A program made the position numbers and the translations under genes. From the sequence record MW812343.1: 64,000 nt of DNA; one strand, 5' to 3'. Below, piece by piece: positions 6,496 through 41,398 of this stretch. A model generated the notes under the pieces. The model was not told where the DNA came from. It ran no database searches and saw nothing but the letters and a program-made list of their open reading frames with translations. Each line of letters starts with the position of its first letter. Within the stretch, counting starts at the first letter, position 1.

Positions 6496-7293
6496 ATGAA
6501 CTCAGTTTACGCCCTCCGCCTACCTGGTCAACTTATCCAGGAGATTGAAGCCCACGAACAGAAAAACTTTAGCCGCCCCTCTAATCTGTGGGATCGTATT
6601 GTTAAAGTTCTGCCGCGTGATGGCGAAATCGCACTGTTGTACGTCATGGCCTCAAGCCTTGATGCCAACGTGGCTATCATCTATTCCCAAGATGGTGTGG
6701 AGCAGTGCCGTCAGCTGCCTATCGTTGAAAAAGGTTCTCTGGGCCAGTTGCTGTTCCTGCATTGCATGACCACCCTGCCGGTCTGGTCTGCACTACGCGG
6801 GCAGTACGACTTCGAGTACATTTACTTCTACGGCCAGAAGCTGTCCAACGACATCGTCGTCGGTGACCAGTCAACGTATCCGCGCTATGTTGAGCGTATC
6901 ACCCCGCAAGACACCGTCGATGCCGGTGACTTCGAGTTTAACATGTTCCGTTTCCACATGGTTGGCGAATCCCGCGATCCGCAGAACACCGTGGCGATGC
7001 GCGCAGCGATCCGTTGTGTGGCCCGTTCCACCACGCGGGAACTATCAACGAACATTAACGAAATCTTCCCGGTGCTACAATACGGCCCGTTGATTACGTT
7101 TAACTCGTATGTGCCGTTCCCGTGCCAGATTCTGACGCCGTATGATAACGAGTGTACACTCGGTGCTGCGAAAGAATACGGCCTGCACGCGAAAGACGCG
7201 GTCACCGTAATCAGTGATGAACGTATCGTGATTAGCGCACTACAAGGTGTGCAAGTCATGGATGTTCCACCAATGACGGTGATGGGTCAATAA
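6496..7293 (+). CDS. hypothetical protein
   Basis: 265 aa ORF, AAGGA SD, followed by a terminator. Confidence 0.7.
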   Translation: MNSVYALRLPGQLIQEIEAHEQKNFSRPSNLWDRIVKVLPRDGEIALLYVMASSLDANVAIIYSQDGVEQCRQLPIVEKGSLGQLLFLHCMTTLPVWSALRGQYDFEYIYFYGQKLSNDIVVGDQSTYPRYVERITPQDTVDAGDFEFNMFRFHMVGESRDPQNTVAMRAAIRCVARSTTRELSTNINEIFPVLQYGPLITFNSYVPFPCQILTPYDNECTLGAAKEYGLHAKDAVTVISDERIVISALQGVQVMDVPPMTVMGQ

Positions 7294-7303
7294 AAAAAGA
7301 AAC

Positions 7304-7337
7304 ACCTGACTCCCTGCGGAGTCAGGTATTCTCTTTT
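7304..7337. terminator. terminator, possibly bidirectional
   Basis: ACCTGACTCC-CTGC-GGAGTCAGGT, A-run before, T-rich after. Confidence 0.8.
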
Positions 7338-7426
7338 AAACGCCCGTGACGAGGTTCTCTCGTTAACGCAGGCGATTTATCGTCTTATTAATTACAAGCG
7401 CTTAGAATGGCTCTGAGGATGTTTAA

Positions 7427-7840
7427 ATGGGGGTTATTACGATGAAAGCACGAAAGAAAGCCTCTCCCGTACCCACAACACACAATTCTTTACCCTTCAC
7501 CTTCGTTCCGAATGCTGATACAGACGCACGGATTGTCCAAGGGTTGGAGACGGATGTTCCTCGGATAAAAGAGTATATCCATCGTAAACGTCGCCAGATG
7601 ATTATCCATTCCATTATCTATTACCGCATGGATGATAACGTTATCTCGGATGACACATGGCAATGCTGGGCAAACGAATTAGCCGCTGTACAGAAGCTCT
7701 ACCCACTCCATTGTAACATCGGTTTCCATGATGAATTGTTTAAAGGGTGGGATGGGTCGACCGGAATGCATCTGGATTTGCAGGAATACTACGGTGTGGC
7801 GTTAGAAGTGATAAGAATCGCCAACTCGTACCAGAAATAA
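7427..7840 (+). CDS. stand-alone NAD-dependent DNA ligase subdomain Ia-like protein
   Basis: HSIIYYRMDDNVISDDTW resembles LigA Ia (Y.YY.LD...ISD..YD); no adenylation KxDG motif. Confidence 0.6.
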   Translation: MGVITMKARKKASPVPTTHNSLPFTFVPNADTDARIVQGLETDVPRIKEYIHRKRRQMIIHSIIYYRMDDNVISDDTWQCWANELAAVQKLYPLHCNIGFHDELFKGWDGSTGMHLDLQEYYGVALEVIRIANSYQK

Positions 7841-7865
7841 TTTCAGATATATATTACCTAGGTGA
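7840..7865 (+). promoter_or_regulatory. early (virion RNAP-type) promoter
   Basis: ATTTCAGATATATATTACCTAGGTGA; contains the phiKZ early core TATATTAC. Confidence 0.8.
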
Positions 7866-7905
7866 ACTTGTACATTAAACCTTTCTTGTCACCTAGGAGT
7901 TAACC

Positions 7906-8088
7906 ATGAACGAAGTCTTAGCCCGTATCGAAGCTGCCCGTCGCGCTCGCATTTCTGAAACCAACCCACATGGCCATCAGTCAGAACAGCTCCGTGCATC
8001 AACCGCGACCTTAGAGCAATCTCTGGAACGTGGTAAAACTGCCGACCGTAATCTGGCTGACGCCATGGCACGTCTGCGTAATTCTTAA
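7906..8088 (+). CDS. small early protein
   Basis: AGGAG SD; first ORF after the early promoter. Confidence 0.75.
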   Translation: MNEVLARIEAARRARISETNPHGHQSEQLRASTATLEQSLERGKTADRNLADAMARLRNS

Positions 8089-8127
8089 TCTGTACTTATC
8101 CCCATTCGACTATCAAGGAACACTATC

Positions 8128-8265
8128 ATGCGTAAATTCACTAAAGTTGCTGCTATCCTCGTTGCCGTTGTTGCTTTCGGCGTGCTGTACAATTCAGTTT
8201 CTAATGACTACGACACCTGCCGCGCTAACGGAAACTCCGTTAACATGTGCACCGGTCGTGGTTAA
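8128..8265 (+). CDS. 45-aa membrane/exported peptide (not in ORF track)
   Basis: MRKFTKVAAILVAVVAFGVLYNSVSNDYDTCRANGNSVNMCTGRG; AAGGA SD; terminator follows. Confidence 0.75.
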   Translation: MRKFTKVAAILVAVVAFGVLYNSVSNDYDTCRANGNSVNMCTGRG

Positions 8266-8271
8266 CCCAAT

Positions 8272-8300
8272 AGGTAGCCTTCGGGCTACCTTAATTTTTT
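8272..8300 (+). terminator. intrinsic terminator
   Basis: AGGTAGCC-TTCG-GGCTACCT + T tract. Confidence 0.9.
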
Positions 8301-8321
8301 GCCTATACAAGGACTATCAAC

Positions 8322-9044
8322 ATGACACTGTTACTGAACCGCTTTGACCTCTCACCACGATTTCCAACCCTCCGCCATGACCCTAAACTCATTTCAGAAG
8401 TGGAAGACCTCCGCCTGGCGGTGTCCGAAGACCCGAACGGTTCTGACAAAGTCTTTGTGGTGATTTACAAAGGTCAAGTTATCTCCGGGGTTTCCTTCTC
8501 CGAGCCAAACTACCCGCGCGAAGAAGACAACGCTCGCGACCGCCGTAACGCAGCCTACACGTCCCTGAGTTATGCGGCGTCATATCTGATGGCCGCTACT
8601 CCGGTGTTTGCAGACCGTGCGATACTGGTCGGGAAAATGGTGGCCCTGTATACCGTGACTAATATGCACGACGATTATAACGATGACCGCATTACACAAC
8701 GTCTGCAAGAAGACCCGCGCAAAGCCCACAACGCATCCGACTGCAAACTGGATGCACTGGCGTTGCTGTCAGAGCTGTACCACGTCTGTCCAACCTTCGA
8801 CAGCAAAGGTATCGTGTCGCAGTATGAAAATGTGAAACTGAACGTGCTGTCGTTGTGGGGAATTGAGAAGATTCGCTACACCCTCACCGCCAAAGGTGGC
8901 ACTTACACCCTCACCGCGCACGTCGATGTCGGCTTTGAAGAAGACGCGCGTGACGCGGTTGATAATTTTATGTCGCAGTTTGAATTCCCACTGCAATCCA
9001 TCCCGGTTGATTCCAACGAAGAGAAAGAAGGAGAAGACGCATAA
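8322..9044 (+). CDS. hypothetical protein
   Basis: 240 aa ORF, AAGGA SD. Confidence 0.75.
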   Translation: MTLLLNRFDLSPRFPTLRHDPKLISEVEDLRLAVSEDPNGSDKVFVVIYKGQVISGVSFSEPNYPREEDNARDRRNAAYTSLSYAASYLMAATPVFADRAILVGKMVALYTVTNMHDDYNDDRITQRLQEDPRKAHNASDCKLDALALLSELYHVCPTFDSKGIVSQYENVKLNVLSLWGIEKIRYTLTAKGGTYTLTAHVDVGFEEDARDAVDNFMSQFEFPLQSIPVDSNEEKEGEDA

Positions 9045-34523: not shown

Positions 34524-35300
34524 ATGACTTTATTAAAAGATCCAACTGTCAAAGAAATCTATTCACTGCCAACCGTGGATGGGAAATATCGCTATGTGTT
34601 CCAGTACAATCTCGGTGATTTAACCCAGAACAACATTCCGCGTGGTATCACCCACAAACTCGTGAATAGCGAGACGGGTGCGACTCTGGTGAGTGGACGG
34701 TTGTTCTTCTGTGCACCCAGTTGGAAGCATGAAGATATGGTGAAGAAAATGCTCGAAGAGATGAAGCTGGTCTCCGCGAGAATGTTCTTCAAGACGGTTG
34801 CACGTAAACCTGATTTGTTGGAGGCGTGGAAACATCACGACCTTCCGGCCCTGAAGGGTGCTTGCGAACGTTACGTCTATGTCGAAGAAGCCATCAATCG
34901 TTTCTTCGCTGACGTAATGAAAACAGAACGTCTACAGAGAAGTCCTAAGGATGGCCAAAACTATCTCATTCGTCAGAAATCAGAAGAACGAATTCGTGGC
35001 AAGTTTGGCAATTACGAACTATCTGTGGTGCGTCGTTTAGAACTGTTTGGCCAAGCATTCGCAGCCAATGACGTTCGTGTAACGTATGAATTATCACCGT
35101 CATTACGTGTTACCACTTCGGAAAGCGTCTCGCCCGGTACACTGTCGTTTACGCTCCGATATCCACTGCACGAGTGGCCGATGTTGAAAGCGTTCTTCCT
35201 TGACCATCGTGTTAATCCCGTCGTCACCGCATGGATTGAAAACAGTTGGACTGAGGAACTCCGTAAACTGGCTATGAACAAAGACAATATCGACTTCTAA
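34524..35300 (+). CDS. hypothetical protein
   Basis: 258 aa monocistronic unit. Confidence 0.75.
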   Translation: MTLLKDPTVKEIYSLPTVDGKYRYVFQYNLGDLTQNNIPRGITHKLVNSETGATLVSGRLFFCAPSWKHEDMVKKMLEEMKLVSARMFFKTVARKPDLLEAWKHHDLPALKGACERYVYVEEAINRFFADVMKTERLQRSPKDGQNYLIRQKSEERIRGKFGNYELSVVRRLELFGQAFAANDVRVTYELSPSLRVTTSESVSPGTLSFTLRYPLHEWPMLKAFFLDHRVNPVVTAWIENSWTEELRKLAMNKDNIDF

Positions 35301-36196: not shown

Positions 36197-36547
36197 ATGC
36201 GCTATATCCACGATGCTACTCGCAATGCCAAAAACAAGTTCGTCAATCACCTGAGCTTCATCATTGAAAAGATTGTCGAAGACGGTGTGACCCAACGTGA
36301 ACTCGCTTCTGTTGCAAAAGTCTCACCGGGCGTCATTAGCAACATCAAATTCGGTCGTGTCGACCGTGTTTCATTTGACGTCGTTAAACGTGTCGCCGAT
36401 GCCCTACGTCTGGAGTATACCATTTCCGTCACGTCCCGCTTTGGTAAGGCTACCGAAACGGTGACTGTACAAACCGGTTATGAATATATGAGGCTCAACG
36501 CCGTATGGCAGAACCATCAGACCAAGTCCGATCGTATCGCACATTAA
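36197..36547 (+). CDS. XRE/Cro-type HTH DNA-binding protein
   Basis: GVTQRELASVAKVSPGVISNIKFG...SFD.V.RVADAL; AAGGAG SD. Confidence 0.85.
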   Translation: MRYIHDATRNAKNKFVNHLSFIIEKIVEDGVTQRELASVAKVSPGVISNIKFGRVDRVSFDVVKRVADALRLEYTISVTSRFGKATETVTVQTGYEYMRLNAVWQNHQTKSDRIAH

Positions 36548-36558
36548 TCGAGGTTATC

Positions 36559-37023
36559 ATGAAAGCAATTTATGCCGCGGGCAAAACCCAACACATTGTT
36601 GCCCCACACGACGAGTGCTGTCCACATTTAAATCTGTGGAAAATTGCGCCGTACTACACGGCCCAAATCGTTGGTCCTATACGTACGGTGTTTTACACCT
36701 GTAAAGCGTGCCACGAAGCGTTGCAGAACGAAATAGCGCAGAACTTTATCCTGTGCAACGACTGCCGTAAACCGATGGCTCCGGAAGAAGTGATTTGCTG
36801 GTCACCGTACGACCAGAATCCTGCGGCTCCGACCATTTACCTGTGTAAAGATTGTGAGTGCGGTACAAAGCACTTCGATCGTGTCGAATACGACCGTGCA
36901 AACTTCGTTGAGAGCTTCCCTGTGAAACAACGCAATCTCCGTCTACTCGCTTCTAGCGATGCCGGTATGAAAATACGTTATATCCCAGAGCCGATACGTC
37001 GTCCGTACGACACACACATCTAA
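36559..37023 (+). CDS. Cys-rich putative zinc-binding protein
   Basis: CCPH, CKAC, CNDC, CKDC; GAGG SD. Confidence 0.7.
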   Translation: MKAIYAAGKTQHIVAPHDECCPHLNLWKIAPYYTAQIVGPIRTVFYTCKACHEALQNEIAQNFILCNDCRKPMAPEEVICWSPYDQNPAAPTIYLCKDCECGTKHFDRVEYDRANFVESFPVKQRNLRLLASSDAGMKIRYIPEPIRRPYDTHI

Positions 37024-37032
37024 CTGTAAAGT

Positions 37033-37063
37033 AAAAGGGGGTCTTTCCCCCTTCTTATTTTTT
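37033..37063 (+). terminator. intrinsic terminator
   Basis: AAGGGGG-TCTTT-CCCCCTT + TTATTTTTT. Confidence 0.75.
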
Positions 37064-37071
37064 GCCTTTTT

Positions 37072-37092
37072 ACGCAACTTCCCTTTTCTGTG
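37072..37092 (+). promoter_or_regulatory. ACG-N14-TGTG promoter candidate
   Basis: TTTTT-ACG-N14-TGTG upstream of the GNAT/Dam operon. Confidence 0.5.
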
Positions 37093-37122
37093 AATAACAA
37101 GAATTTGTTGCGGGGGAAATCG

Positions 37123-38130
37123 ATGCAATCGATAGCGCAATCAACCATCATTAAACCGTCGGTCGAACCGACAGAACAGCAAATCAATATCACCATTGAA
37201 CGCCTTACTTGGGGTAGCGAAAAAGCGCGGCAATATTATCATGCATTTGGGTCACGGACACTCGCCATCAAGCGACTGAACGTTATTCTTAAAAATCCAC
37301 AGTATCAGGTCTTTGGTTTACGTAATGACCATCATACTCCACTCGGGTACGTGTCCGTCATCACCACCATGGGCGATGAGACTCTCATCATTCACCATGC
37401 TGAGGAGATTGTTTCAAACTCCTTGAACAAAGTGGCGATTATGATGTTGCTGGATCATATCGGGTGTCGTTATGCCATGACGGTCGAGGGGACTTCCGAT
37501 AACTTTGACTTCCGTAAACGGATGGGTTTCAAGCTGATTGAAAACAATTGGATGATCGCCTGTAAGCCGTACGAGAAACTCCCTGTCGATAAACGGATAG
37601 TGGATGTCTCTGGTTTAGAGTCGCTCAATGAACATCAGCTGGAGCAATTGACTAATTTGGTCAGGTACACCATCTGGCGGGAAGGGCAGACCGATCCATT
37701 CGAGCGGGAAATCTTCCGTGAGGTTTTACCGGAGTCTGTGATTGAACGGGGTCGTACCAGTCAATACAAAACGTTGGTCTGGATGGACGCCGGGGATATC
37801 TTGGGTGTGGCACAACTGCAATACGCACAATGGGGTGAGGTTATCCTGAGCGGTGTTGGGGTGGATGGTTCACATACCGGGAAACGTATTGGTCGTAACC
37901 TGATTGCGGCCGCCACACAAAAGGCCGGACTATCCCACGAACACCTAATGGCCACCACGTTCGCCAACAACACACCCATGAATCACCTCTTTGGTGAATT
38001 ACTGCGGTGGGAGAAACTGCCGGGGTCAATCGGGGTTGAGTTGGTTGAGAACGCGGTCAGTTGGAAAAAGTCGAAGAAGTATCTGGGCATTACAGCCGGA
38101 CACGGTGCGCCGGTGTACAAAGGGGATTAA
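37123..38130 (+). CDS. tandem GNAT-fold acetyltransferase
   Basis: C-domain VGVDGSHTGKRIGRNLI...NTPM..LF; N-domain DFRKRMGF. Confidence 0.75.
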   Translation: MQSIAQSTIIKPSVEPTEQQINITIERLTWGSEKARQYYHAFGSRTLAIKRLNVILKNPQYQVFGLRNDHHTPLGYVSVITTMGDETLIIHHAEEIVSNSLNKVAIMMLLDHIGCRYAMTVEGTSDNFDFRKRMGFKLIENNWMIACKPYEKLPVDKRIVDVSGLESLNEHQLEQLTNLVRYTIWREGQTDPFEREIFREVLPESVIERGRTSQYKTLVWMDAGDILGVAQLQYAQWGEVILSGVGVDGSHTGKRIGRNLIAAATQKAGLSHEHLMATTFANNTPMNHLFGELLRWEKLPGSIGVELVENAVSWKKSKKYLGITAGHGAPVYKGD

Positions 38131-38131
38131 C

Positions 38132-38953
38132 ATGCGTTCAATTTTAAAATGGGTCGGCGGAAAGAAGCGCATCATCACGCCCCTGAAAAAGGTGTTCGGT
38201 GAAGTGGACTGTTTCGTTGAACCATTCGTGGGCGCAGGCTCGGTGTTCATGAACACCAACTTCCCGAAATACATTCTGTCAGATTACAATCCGGACTTGG
38301 TGGCGGTACTTCGGTCTGCGATGGAAGCCCCGGACGATTTGGTAGAAGCCTGTCAGGAACTGTGGGCTAACGGGTGTGACCCGGAGGTCTATGCGCAACG
38401 TCGGGAGATTCTCAATAACCGTGAGAACGTTACCGTCGAAGACACCATTGACCGGGCGGCTATCTTCATCTATTTGAACCGTCATGGGTATAACGGGTTG
38501 TGTCGCTACAACCAATCGGGGGGTTATAACGTCCCGTACGGCGACCACAAAACCAAACCGTATTTACCAAAAGACGAAATCCATGCTTTCTGGAAACGTT
38601 GCACCGAAACAGAAGTCACACTTCACTGCTGTGGATTTGAGGAGACGATAACCAATGCACCGAAAGGGTCATTGATTTACGCGGACCCTCCGTACATTCC
38701 CAGCTCGAAGACTTCATCGTTTGCACAATACCACAAAGCCTCCTTTAACCAACAACACCAACGCCAACTGGCTAAACTCCTAAAAGAAGCACACCTTCGT
38801 GGTTGTCGTGTAGTCTTGTCGAACTCTGATACGCTGCTCACCAAAGACATCTACTATGGCTTCCGATGGGAGACAGTAGAGGTGGGTCGCTATCTAGGGT
38901 CGAAAGCCGAAACCCGCGGACGTGTGAATGAGTTGATTGGTGTTCTGGAGTAA
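38132..38953 (+). CDS. dam: DNA adenine methyltransferase
   Basis: LKWVGGK, FVEPFVGAGSVF, LNRHGYNGLCRYN, YADPPY, LSNSD. Confidence 0.96.
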   Translation: MRSILKWVGGKKRIITPLKKVFGEVDCFVEPFVGAGSVFMNTNFPKYILSDYNPDLVAVLRSAMEAPDDLVEACQELWANGCDPEVYAQRREILNNRENVTVEDTIDRAAIFIYLNRHGYNGLCRYNQSGGYNVPYGDHKTKPYLPKDEIHAFWKRCTETEVTLHCCGFEETITNAPKGSLIYADPPYIPSSKTSSFAQYHKASFNQQHQRQLAKLLKEAHLRGCRVVLSNSDTLLTKDIYYGFRWETVEVGRYLGSKAETRGRVNELIGVLE

Positions 38954-38955
38954 CC

Positions 38956-39750
38956 ATGCACCTGTTATCTTATCCGCCTGTGTACGAACGCCCTGTCATC
39001 CTGAACGGTAAGCAGGTTGAGGTCGAGCGTATCTGGCAAGGTATCAAACAAACCCATTCGTTAGCGATGGATGAGGAGCACTATCTGGTGGTATCCAATA
39101 CCCGCCAAACACTCCTCGTATTGAGCGGCGAACGTCACGGTGATGTGTTCCATATCCTGAATTTGGTACCGATGACGGACAAACCGTTTTACCAATGGAA
39201 GTCCCTCATGCGCCAACTCGAAGTGGTTCATTTCGATGTGGTGTTGAGTCCCGGCGAAGCCATCGAAGGTGAGATATGCCGTGCGATGGGGCTTGAGTTC
39301 GTGACCAAGCGTGTGAAGTTCACCCCGTTTGATGTTTCTCGTTTCAATACCCGCGCACCGATGATTCATCGTCAGGAGAACTGTTCTCTGGAAGAGATGG
39401 AGAAGGTGTGTGAGATAACGAAAAAATCACTGGTGGGTTACAAGCACGCCTTAAAAGAAGTGGCTTTCGGTTTCATGGAAGTGTTGGTGCGTAAACAGAA
39501 CGGCAAGATTACCGCTGCCCTGTTTGTAAGCCAGCAACCCAATGCACTGACGGTTGCCAATTACGTTTCTGTGTTCCACCCACAAGACCGACAGTACGCG
39601 CAGGACTTTAGCGAGTTCTTCCGCTTTCTGTTGAAACTGTGCGGGACAGAGAAGAAGTCGTTGTACATCTCGCTGGACGCCAATGCGGAGGTACCGACTT
39701 ACGATGGGATTACCCACGAAGTGGTGACTCATCATTACACGATTACTTAG
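38956..39750 (+). CDS. putative degenerate tandem GNAT-fold protein
   Basis: Two-domain pattern; ICRAMGLEF; VLVRKQNGKITAALFV. Confidence 0.45.
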   Translation: MHLLSYPPVYERPVILNGKQVEVERIWQGIKQTHSLAMDEEHYLVVSNTRQTLLVLSGERHGDVFHILNLVPMTDKPFYQWKSLMRQLEVVHFDVVLSPGEAIEGEICRAMGLEFVTKRVKFTPFDVSRFNTRAPMIHRQENCSLEEMEKVCEITKKSLVGYKHALKEVAFGFMEVLVRKQNGKITAALFVSQQPNALTVANYVSVFHPQDRQYAQDFSEFFRFLLKLCGTEKKSLYISLDANAEVPTYDGITHEVVTHHYTIT

Positions 39751-39757
39751 GAGGGGT

Positions 39758-40516
39758 ATGAGAGAGATAACGCAAGAGGTACTCGACGGGTCGTATGACA
39801 AACCGTTAGGTCGGGGTGTGCTGGACTGGCGCATTTTAGAACTGTCGCCGATGGAAACGAAACACATCGTGGAAGTGGGTCGGTGGCGTGTGTACCTGAA
39901 ACGTCACCGTATCCAAGAGACCGCGTTGCTGGTTTCGATTGACCGATTCGGTGATGTCGACGAACCGCTGCTACTCTTACCGGACGTGCTGGACGTTAAT
40001 GCGGTCTTTGCGTACTCAAAGACCACGAACGATGAAGAACTGAAAAAGATAGGTTTCGAACTTCATGCTGTGAAGTATATTGTTCCTCCTCGGGACGGTG
40101 TGCGGCCACCACCGAAGATGGTTGAAAATTGCCTATTGACCGACGAGGAAAGCAAATCCTTTAAGGAAGCGGCCAGTAACATTGAAAGTATGCGCAAAGC
40201 AGCGGAAGCCTACGGTATGGGGACGGCAGCGTTCCACCGTGTTGATTTCGGTGACGGTCGTACCGCCGTGGCACTCATTGATGTGGTTGATGGCCATGCG
40301 GAGCTGCTGACTCATTGGGCCAGTGATTTCCAATCGCAAATGGTTATCGCCGATATGTTTGATTACATCGCATCTGGTCAGAAAGACGGGGGTAGTTATG
40401 CGGTTAACCGCGCAACGTTTGATGACCCAACCCCACTTGTACAAACGCTCGAAACCCTGAACACCCAAACCCGTGGTGTCTATATCATCCTAAAAGGAGT
40501 ATCAAATGCAAACTAG
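39758..40516 (+). CDS. putative degenerate tandem GNAT-fold protein
   Basis: ELKKIGFE; beta-rich GRTAVALIDVVDGHAELL. Confidence 0.45.
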   Translation: MREITQEVLDGSYDKPLGRGVLDWRILELSPMETKHIVEVGRWRVYLKRHRIQETALLVSIDRFGDVDEPLLLLPDVLDVNAVFAYSKTTNDEELKKIGFELHAVKYIVPPRDGVRPPPKMVENCLLTDEESKSFKEAASNIESMRKAAEAYGMGTAAFHRVDFGDGRTAVALIDVVDGHAELLTHWASDFQSQMVIADMFDYIASGQKDGGSYAVNRATFDDPTPLVQTLETLNTQTRGVYIILKGVSNAN

Positions 40517-40802
40517 CATCAATCGTTCTGTGGCCCGTTCTAAAGAAGTGGTTTATGATGTGGTGTCTGGTGACGAGACATTGTTCCGTGCAGTCATCAT
40601 GCCGACCAACGAACTGCTTGTTGTCCATCCCGGTACTGAACTTTCTAAAGCGGAGAAGTCCGCACTGGATAAGTTGATTGCCAAAGCGAAACATCGTGAC
40701 GGTATTGCGGACCACCGTGTTGTCTTCGAGCGCGTGCTTGTGGAGAACGGTAAAGACTTAGAAGTCCGTCTGAACACCCCGCAAGTAGATGCCTTTGTAT
40801 GA
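40506..40802 (+). CDS. hypothetical protein
   Basis: AAGGAG SD. Confidence 0.75.
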   Translation: MQTSINRSVARSKEVVYDVVSGDETLFRAVIMPTNELLVVHPGTELSKAEKSALDKLIAKAKHRDGIADHRVVFERVLVENGKDLEVRLNTPQVDAFV

Positions 40803-40829: not shown

Positions 40830-41330
40830 ATGGATGTTATCGATTTCGAACAGCTACCCCAGCACGACTTCGACCTCGGCGTCCGTGACATGGATGGCAG
40901 CTTCGAAGAAAATGCGCGCGCGCTGTTCCAGAAATACGGTGAACTGATTATGGGCTCTGACCAGCCTGAAATTACCTTGGGTGATTTCGAGAAGCTACTG
41001 GTCGGCCTTATCACATCCCGTACCGAAGGCAGAGCATTGCTGAATGAGCTGAACTTCACCACAGTCTGTCCCGCAGATGCCGCTGGTATCCTGTCCCAAT
41101 CCATCGTTCCAACCGATGAGATTCTCGACAGTGTGGCTAAGCTGCGTGGGCCGTTCGACACGGCTGTGGAAGACTACGCCCAACAGTTAGCGGAGTCGGA
41201 ATACGCAATGGTTGCCCCTGAGGGTGAGCAGTTGCCTTCTGATGAAGAAACTGAAACGGCACGGTTGCGCCTTGCGCGTTACGTCATTACCAGCGTACTG
41301 GTTGACGATCGCGAAGAGTGCCAGCTCTAA
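40830..41330 (+). CDS. highly acidic protein
   Basis: About 35 D/E vs 12 K/R in 166 aa (hand count). Confidence 0.75.
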   Translation: MDVIDFEQLPQHDFDLGVRDMDGSFEENARALFQKYGELIMGSDQPEITLGDFEKLLVGLITSRTEGRALLNELNFTTVCPADAAGILSQSIVPTDEILDSVAKLRGPFDTAVEDYAQQLAESEYAMVAPEGEQLPSDEETETARLRLARYVITSVLVDDREECQL

Positions 41331-41337
41331 TCAAATG

Positions 41338-41369
41338 ACCTCACCTTCGGGTGAGGTTTATTTTTTTTT
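41338..41369 (+). terminator. intrinsic terminator
   Basis: ACCTCACC-TTCG-GGTGAGGT + T run. Confidence 0.9.
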
Positions 41370-41377
41370 GTCTTTTT

Positions 41378-41398
41378 ACAGAATAGCACCTATCTATG
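41378..41398 (+). promoter_or_regulatory. ACA-N14-TATG promoter candidate
   Basis: TTTTT-ACA-N14-TATG. Confidence 0.6.

Follow-up and report, generated by a model that had tools for sequence, protein, structure and literature searches.

Several characterised acyltransferases, MshD (1OZP), VipF (6WQB), the clavulanate protein ORF14/CBG (2WPW), GlmA (5KF1) and WecD (2FS5), consist of two lobes of the GCN5-related acetyltransferase (GNAT) fold with a cleft between them, all in a single chain. In the characterised members of this tandem-GNAT group, catalysis takes place in the C-terminal lobe only (PMC10936415). Phages also make use of the fold: the Rac protein of phiKMV-like phages acetylates the alpha subunit of RNA polymerase, the Mom protein of phage Mu is a GNAT-superfamily member that acts on adenine N6, and the GNATs of jumbo phages have been predicted to modify host proteins (PMC7824862). 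Here we describe a locus in the genome of the Erwinia jumbo phage pEa_SNUABM_6 (MW812343, 240 kb, Machinavirus), an SPN3US-like fire-blight phage, as found in a stretch of 64,000 nucleotides of this record (the window; window coordinates are record coordinates minus 62000). In this locus a predicted tandem-GNAT acyltransferase (gene A), a Dam methyltransferase and two proteins of previously unassigned function (genes C and D) follow one another closely. A, C and D appear to be diverged members of one family of two-lobed GNAT-fold proteins, C and D lack the loop that would bind coenzyme A (CoA), and Dam can be separated from the family.

Every coding sequence of this region is labelled 'hypothetical protein' in MW812343, and the records of related phages name only A (GCN5-related acetyltransferase) and Dam. 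Over positions 36900-40800 the window agrees with pEa_SNUABM_6 at 100% identity, and Huxley, Machina, Parshik and pSal-SNUABM-04 share 82% identity with it. The original prediction, made from the window alone, had read four open reading frames (ORFs) of the + strand as an operon of three tandem-GNAT-like proteins wrapped around Dam and coupled behind one promoter candidate. The four ORFs agree with the GenBank coding sequences and their tight packing is real; the extent of the operon had been underestimated, the unit being made of six co-directional, tightly packed ORFs, with E and F added (Table 1). Only 1 nt lies between A and Dam, the Dam ATG sitting one base past the TAA stop of A, 2 nt lie between Dam and C and 7 nt between C and D, and E overlaps D by 11 nt. 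As read from the sequence, A-Dam-C-D-E-F is one predicted co-directional transcription unit, bounded by conserved hairpins and a shared T-rich motif.

Table 1. Features of the locus and of its borders, in window coordinates
Feature	Position	Strand	Size	Remarks
ORF upstream of A	36505-37023			phrog_8344; four Cys pairs (CC..H, C..C, C..C, C..C.C)
Upstream boundary	37035-37073	+		terminator-like hairpin 37035-37053, T-run, motif TTTTTTGCCTTTTTAC 37058-37073; candidate promoter element for a phage RNA polymerase
Gene A	37123-38130	+	335 aa	tandem-GNAT acyltransferase (predicted)
Dam	38132-38953	+	273 aa	D12-class N6-adenine DNA methyltransferase
Gene C	38956-39750	+	264 aa	tandem-GNAT-fold protein (modelled); phrog_9941
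Gene D (D1 type)	39758-40516	+	252 aa	tandem-GNAT-fold protein (modelled); phrog_15621; acidic, isoelectric point (pI) 5.0
Gene E	40506-40802	+	98 aa	phrog_7896; in every inspected phage with Dam-C-D
Gene F	40830-41330	+	166 aa	phrog_8221; pI 4.05, net charge -23; last of the unit
Downstream boundary, start of next unit	41337-41379	+		terminator-like hairpin 41337-41358, motif TTTTTTGTCTTTTTAC 41364-41379

Neither C nor D matches a sequence of Pfam, NCBIfam or the PDB, even when half-proteins are searched at E-values up to 10, and PHROGs places them only in its unknown-function families. Both families are small: a word-indexed search of 5.8 billion proteins found 8 clusters for C, an exhaustive profile search of 1.84 billion proteins found 8 representatives for the D1 subfamily, to which the window's D belongs, and all members of the C and D families come from SPN3US-like jumbo phages. 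Among sequenced jumbo phages of Erwinia, Salmonella, Escherichia and Proteus, phrog_9941 occurs in at least 53 and phrog_15621 in at least 17, the latter being a blast count for D1 only.

AlphaFold2 modelled C with a mean predicted local distance difference test score (pLDDT) of 90.2 and a predicted template-modelling score (pTM) of 0.81 from an alignment of 14 sequences, and D with a pLDDT of 91.8 and a pTM of 0.83 from 13 sequences; all five models agree (pLDDT 88.6-91.8). When the C model was compared to the PDB with Foldseek, VipF came first (E 2.7e-11), followed by MAB_4324, clavulanate ORF14, MshD and WecD, all two-lobed GNATs. With VIA-align, the whole chain of C reaches Z 11.3 to VipF over 230 residues and Z 10.1-10.3 to MshD, while its C-lobe (residues 133-264) matches RibT, RimI and AAC(6') at Z 10-11 with a root-mean-square deviation of about 3 Å. 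The best Foldseek match of D is also VipF (E 1.2e-7). D was also aligned with VIA against all of 48,161 chains, independently of Foldseek; WecD (Z 9.9), VipF (9.2) and MshD (9.0, 234 residues) came out on top, and GNAT-superfamily folds, FemX/FemA included, made up all 50 of the matches listed. The C-lobe of D (residues 119-247) reaches Z 7-8.3 to single-domain GNATs. The ESM Atlas gives GNAT-named neighbours for C (0.94-0.95) and no useful neighbour for D (0.76). The GNAT fold runs in the order beta1-alpha1-alpha2-beta2-beta3-beta4-alpha3-beta5-alpha4-beta6(-beta7). The order of secondary structure elements in the C and D models fits this scheme, and with the structural matches this places both proteins, at the level of the fold, among the GNATs and the tandem GNATs. 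Structure prediction of the 38956 and 39758 ORFs thus bore out the GNAT-like fold that had been proposed for both, and the objection that they might lack it falls away. The (K/R)xxG(F/L) motifs noticed in the same reading are real and conserved: RKRMGFKL in A (F136 invariant), CRAMGLEF in C (G112 nearly invariant) and LKKIGFEL in D (G99 invariant). In structure, C and D come closest to the tandem GNATs listed above, from which they differ in having no CoA loop in either lobe, in an identity of 6-13%, in being shorter than most (252-264 aa) and in belonging to a paralogue array within a phage operon.

In gene A the two lobes are of unequal quality. The C-lobe matches Pfam Acetyltransf_1 (residues 191-290, E 2e-8), and a profile of seven A orthologues finds GNATs in the PDB only with its C-terminal half. 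The 'G.RIG..L' motif that the original prediction had pointed out is GKRIGRNL (residues 253-260; 37879-37902), in which G257, R258 and L260 are invariant in the seven orthologues. A263, N283 and H288 are likewise invariant, the last two in an N283...H288-L289 element, and a motif-B-like N..HLF lies at 37966-37998. GKRIGRNL with its invariant G-R is confined to the C-lobe of A, which thus carries the CoA-loop feature. In the degenerate N-lobe, which spans about residues 24-150, the final stretch is RKRMGFKL (37513-37536), similar to the '...GF' with which a GNAT lobe closes; searches of Pfam, NCBIfam and the PDB with the N-terminal half, also as an isolated half-protein at E up to 10, gave no sequence match. 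The view of A as a two-domain GNAT was therefore sound, with two lobes and one canonical CoA motif, as indicated by Pfam, the orthologue profile and the structural matches of the orthologues in BFVD. Having its CoA motif only in the C-lobe, A has the pattern expected for the C-terminal-lobe catalysis of the characterised tandem GNATs.

The relationship between A, C and D came out of structure and sequence comparisons alike. A BFVD search with the C model returned its own orthologues and then the A family (Kwan at E 1.3e-14 with a template-modelling (TM) score of 0.63 over 275 columns; Derbicus; CR5), the A orthologues of these three phages aligning over their full length with C (about 275-306 columns). 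After the A family came proteins with lengths and hosts fitting D2, a second D subfamily, and D1 (e.g. phiEaH2 J7KKF1, 256 aa). On this structural evidence A would itself be two-lobed and the nearest relative of C. Profile alignments are colinear over 216-225 columns between A and C (P 0.002-0.005) and over 186-194 columns between C and D (P 0.003-0.03). As a control, A, C, D1 and D2 were compared to 11 unrelated protein families taken from the eight loci that had supplied them. Among the 50 profile-profile scores, the top four all fall within A/C/D1/D2 and are colinear over 187-235 columns, the best background match covering 65 columns; the computed chance of such a ranking is about 6e-5. One protein of phage CR5, CR5_100, bridges A (hhalign probability 98.7%) and C (44.5%, 211 colinear columns).

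The family is far from static. The window, Huxley, ChrisDB (gp124) and Kwan (gp134) have D1, and SPN3US (gp107), phiEaH2 (gp030) and ChrisDB (gp123) have D2, so that ChrisDB, like Caitlin, carries both. No D2 protein is among the 8 representatives found by the exhaustive D1 profile search, showing that D1 and D2 are not linked at the HMMER level. Between ChrisDB (locus L008; D1 at 7613-8368, D2 at 6813-7610) and Caitlin (locus L009), D1 is 49% identical, compared to 83% for D2, 73% for C and 86% for Dam, which suggests that D1, as an extra copy beside D2, may be under relaxed or diversifying selection. In a Wellington-like metagenomic lineage, C is called as a protein of only 163 aa after a 350-nt gap behind Dam (JGI metagenome contig L019, 5651-6492; L020; L021); this form, seen on three contigs from different samples, possibly reflects loss of the N-lobe or a frameshift. 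Separately, proteins of about 214 aa in the same phages (in BFVD, Huxley A0A1B2IDM8 and Kwan A0A1B2IE03) match the C model with E-values of 1e-6 to 1e-8 and TM scores of 0.32-0.43, and may be another GNAT-like family. No member of it could be located in the window; SPN3US gp103 and ChrisDB gp119, which are of fitting size and adjoin A, have no homologue there.

The beta4-alpha3 loops of C and D, located from the modelled secondary structure, read MTDKPFYQ (N-lobe) and FHPQDRQYAQDF (C-lobe, 39574-39609) in C, and RFGDVDEP and, in the C-lobe, WASDFQSQ (40316-40339) in D. The Q/RxxGxG/A loop that holds the CoA pyrophosphate is absent from both lobes of both proteins, there is no conserved glycine at this place, and the only conserved residues nearby are Y214 and F218 in C and F201 and Y203 in D. 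Neither protein has a recognisable catalytic lobe. At the same spot, D1 proteins of the Wellington type read GEGIP, that of ChrisDB QGSQD and that of the window SDFQS, a variation consistent with decay of an ancestral motif. The proteins themselves are not decaying. The ratio of non-synonymous to synonymous substitution rates (dN/dS) is 0.07-0.13 for C and D in four independent close pairs (0.075-0.127 for C), 0.05-0.08 for Dam and 0.05-0.13 across all six genes. This is purifying selection, which means that C and D are maintained proteins and not pseudogenes. Over longer distances, no genes of the neighbourhood have diverged more than A, C and D, which show 27-44% identity compared to 54-65% for Dam and 48-64% for F.

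How tightly the family is tied to Dam can be judged from its distribution. The order Dam-C-D-E-F is unbroken in about 20 inspected loci of Machinavirus, Seoulvirus (SPN3US), Erskinevirus, Wellingtonvirus and diverged metagenomic contigs; these genomes being broadly colinear, such conservation is weak evidence of function. A is less constant: against 53 phage records with C there are 48 with A, and it is Erskinevirus (phiEaH2, Stratton, Asesino) that accounts for the gap. Indeed, phiEaH2, Asesino, Stratton and one further Erskinevirus locus have Dam-C-D2-E-F and no A. The opposite situation is met in Derbicusvirus (CR5, EarlPhillipIV, Derbicus, Phobos, pEa_SNUABM_38), which was reached by taking the well-conserved F as an anchor. 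Here, at the corresponding place, the A profile matches two adjacent genes directly after thymidylate kinase, and in CR5 and EarlPhillipIV three tandem-GNAT genes stand in a row, those of CR5 being CR5_099, CR5_100 and CR5_101 (285, 285 and 295 aa). The first two are full-length A homologues (hhalign probabilities 98.8 and 98.7) with the canonical motifs QRKGIG and RLQGIG; the third lacks the motif and is colinear with C (P 0.009) and with CR5_099 (P 0.002). A PF02086 search of the whole CR5 and EarlPhillipIV genomes (about 224 kb each) found no D12 methylase, control genomes being positive. Thus, the GNAT-fold genes do not depend on the presence of a methylase: the array exists without Dam and Dam-C-D without A, and F is separable as well. 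The original prediction had seen in the locus an acylation/methylation module, and this part of it is not supported in the light of Derbicusvirus and Erskinevirus. The linkage to Dam, which a synteny survey was to settle, is conserved within one colinear clade and absent from Derbicusvirus.

Dam itself scores 179.5 bits against PF02086 (E 1e-52; cut-off 22) and 245.5 bits against TIGR00571 (cut-off 114.85), which makes it a member of the Dam family, with an S-adenosylmethionine-binding FVGAGS within 38219-38248 and a catalytic DPPY at 38684-38695. It matches E. coli Dam structures over its full length with 211 bits, against 45 bits for T4 Dam, and is best described as an ordinary E. coli-type enzyme, GATC being its probable target from this closeness. 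Like the D12 methyltransferases of the E. coli Dam/DpnII type, it has the DPPY and FxGxG motifs and a full-length match to them; it differs in being phage-borne and in residing in a genome that is 3- to 4-fold depleted for GATC. In the 64-kb window, GATC is the most depleted of all 4-bp palindromes, with 88 sites observed against 324 expected from trinucleotides, an observed-to-expected ratio (O/E) of 0.27. The depletion is family-wide (O/E 0.05-0.37) and equally strong in the Dam-less CR5 and EarlPhillipIV, so that GATC avoidance and Dam carriage are independent traits here.

The explanation that we favour is that of an accessory array of paralogues, in which A acylates a protein or a small amine, C and D only bind, and Dam independently methylates GATC. 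As a complete package, its chances are somewhat better than even; the parts that concern the fold, the paralogy and the independence of Dam are, taken jointly, very probably right. A, C and D would descend from a single two-lobed GNAT ancestor. A would probably work as an N-acyltransferase on the plan of MshD or VipF, its N-lobe being structural, its C-lobe catalytic and its acceptor lodged in the cleft between the two. In C and D, loss of the CoA loop from both lobes would have put an end to acyl transfer from CoA and left pseudoenzymes that bind the protein or small-molecule ligand of the family. That C and D are non-catalytic we regard as reasonably probable. The original prediction had already taken the degenerate copies for non-catalytic partners; the first word is made plausible by the missing CoA motif, and the second loses weight since Erskinevirus retains C and D without A. 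The family would turn over by duplication, replacement and truncation, a pattern that suits accessory genes of host takeover or counter-defence, and Dam would share the expression of the array and methylate GATC on its own. A host-directed or counter-defence role is suggested, tentatively, by the fast long-range divergence, the gene turnover and the published prediction for jumbo-phage GNATs (PMC7824862). Like effectors of the Rac type, A is a GNAT that a phage encodes away from its structural gene modules, a likeness by description only; Rac is not described as two-lobed (PMC7824862) and has no counterpart of the degenerate paralogues.

Several points speak against this explanation. The fold of the A N-lobe rests on the BFVD models of orthologues and on profile alignments, and the hhalign P-values, 0.002-0.03, are individually weak. 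Loss of the consensus loop is no proof of lost CoA binding, as contacts are made by the backbone. The C-lobes have conserved small-residue motifs, A170/G172 in C and G153/G155 in D, which could mark a live ligand site. The unbroken Dam-C-D-E-F order extends to diverged contigs and to Wellingtonvirus, where the upstream context is different, making a functional tie to Dam possible. Finally, a literature search found no paper naming SPN3US gp104-gp107 or the array, and no biochemical, expression or interaction report.

C and D could instead be non-catalytic subunits of a hetero-complex with A, targeting or regulating its acyltransferase activity, which is what the earlier idea of partners amounts to. 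The tight coupling of the genes in one unit, the fold common to the three proteins and the presence of the CoA motif in A alone are all in keeping with such a complex. We nevertheless consider it unlikely, because in Erskinevirus, where A is missing, C and D must work without it, unless another GNAT substitutes; moreover, the characterised tandem GNATs hold the 'partner' lobe in their own chain.

FemX, MprF and Sba18/Sbb17 are two-lobed GNAT-fold enzymes without a CoA loop. By analogy, C and D might still be transferases, drawing not on acyl-CoA but on some other donor, e.g. aminoacyl-tRNA, and the structural match lists do include MprF, A-PGS/L-PGS, Sba18/Sbb17 and FemX/FemA. Strong purifying selection and conserved glycine motifs near the acceptor region of the C-lobe also agree with retained activity. 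These matches, however, score lower (Z 7.5-8.6) than those to the CoA-dependent tandem GNATs (Z 9-11), the closest relatives of C and D in both sequence and structure are the CoA-type A family, and invariant polar residues are few: R119 in C, with K234 and H260 nearly so, and T5 in D, with K35, E131 and Y203 nearly so. Altogether, this makes such an activity quite improbable.

The adjacency of Dam-C-D-E-F in every inspected phage with Dam, the nucleotide-metabolism neighbours (thymidylate kinase) and the precedent of Mu Mom, a GNAT-superfamily protein directed at adenine N6 (PMC7824862), could be interpreted as meaning that the GNAT-fold proteins and Dam jointly make a Mom-like acyl or hypermodified base at adenine N6, or modify nucleotides, and so shield the phage DNA. 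The locus does resemble Mu Mom and host Dam in combining a GNAT-superfamily protein with adenine-N6 chemistry in a phage. It departs from them in that the Derbicusvirus array occurs without a genomic D12 methylase and that Dam occurs without a CoA-competent GNAT, Erskinevirus having dropped the sole such member. In addition, Dam is a plain E. coli-type enzyme in a genome already depleted for GATC, and C and D show no detectable similarity to the DNA-modification families annotated in Pfam, PHROGs and NCBIfam (libraries that were not checked for a Mom model). Such joint modification thus has very little to recommend it, and the tempting idea of a new Dam-coupled DNA acylation system, being unsupported, has been removed. 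We give just as little credence to a variant in which the paralogues without CoA loop (C, D1, D2 and CR5_101) are enzymes acting with a non-CoA donor on DNA or nucleotides, maybe at or near N6-methyladenine beside Dam; were it true, it would reveal an undescribed base modification in SPN3US-like jumbo phages.

It is hardly credible that shallow alignments misled the structure prediction and gave C and D a spurious likeness to GNATs: the alignments are indeed small, Pfam and PDB sequence matches are missing and the best Z of D is only moderately above the 7-8 background of the tool, but the agreement of the five models, the unbroken list of GNAT-superfamily matches and the independent sequence evidence, in which profiles align colinearly with A and C is set beside GNAT clusters by an ESM feature search, all argue against such an artefact.

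The reading of C and D as tandem-GNAT paralogues, which extends to D2 and CR5_101, had no precedent in GenBank, PHROGs or the searchable literature, although the fold family is a known one; it gives phrog_9941 and phrog_15621 a fold and an origin. These phages thus maintain an evolving array derived from an acetyltransferase, most members of which appear to have lost their cofactor site. Factors of host takeover or counter-defence may plausibly be sought in pseudoenzyme arrays of this kind, which lie open to test in the SPN3US genetic system.

Both ends of the transcription unit are marked by a hairpin followed by the 16-mer TTTTTTG(C/T)CTTTTTAC. Its exact copies in the 64 kb are these two, with 4 matches at up to 2 mismatches against 0.66 expected, and the + strand between the two hairpins contains no other hairpin with the 16-mer behind it. 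Upstream of the A orthologue, a hairpin with TTTTTAC recurs in six related phages; Huxley, SPN3US, ChrisDB, Caitlin and Wellington show it both there and downstream of the F orthologue, and the Erskinevirus loci also have it downstream of F. The T-run and TTTTTAC motif may be the type of promoter used by the phage's own RNA polymerase. No sigma-70-like promoter was found upstream of A, and none is expected, since such phages are described as carrying their own multisubunit RNA polymerases (PMC7598289). Of the single promoter proposed earlier, a phage-specific element with a conserved motif therefore remains plausible and one of the sigma-70 type does not. A T(G/A)TG(T/A)-like element lies about 20-25 nt past the T-run/TTTTTAC motif in the window and in related loci. 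A search of sequencing runs found no genuine RNA run with this stretch, the matches being DNA datasets and contigs from wastewater 'RNA-Seq' that may be DNA.

The last two genes of the unit, E and F, have no Pfam, NCBIfam or PDB sequence match. F has 35 invariant positions across 9 orthologues, and its charge suggests a protein of the DNA-mimic type. In Derbicusvirus, F lies about 10 kb from the GNAT array, directly behind a P-loop ATPase of 448-482 aa with GPPGTGKS and an N-terminal hydrophobic segment (CR5_117, L023, 5389-6735; EarlPhillipIV, L024, 5287-6735), which fills the place upstream of F that is held by the Dam/GNAT genes in the clade of the window. This ORF was considered as a fused C+D; it is the P-loop ATPase and has no similarity to the GNAT profiles.

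Genes of nucleotide metabolism, such as the thymidylate kinase, abound in the neighbourhood. With a best hhalign score of 21.2 to C over 126 columns, and none to A or to the CR5 proteins, the 258-aa ORF at 34524-35300 probably does not belong among the paralogues. The small protein encoded upstream of A, probably a zinc-ribbon protein from its cysteine pairs, stands between a helix-turn-helix regulator and the GNAT array and is kept in SPN3US, ChrisDB and phiEaH2.

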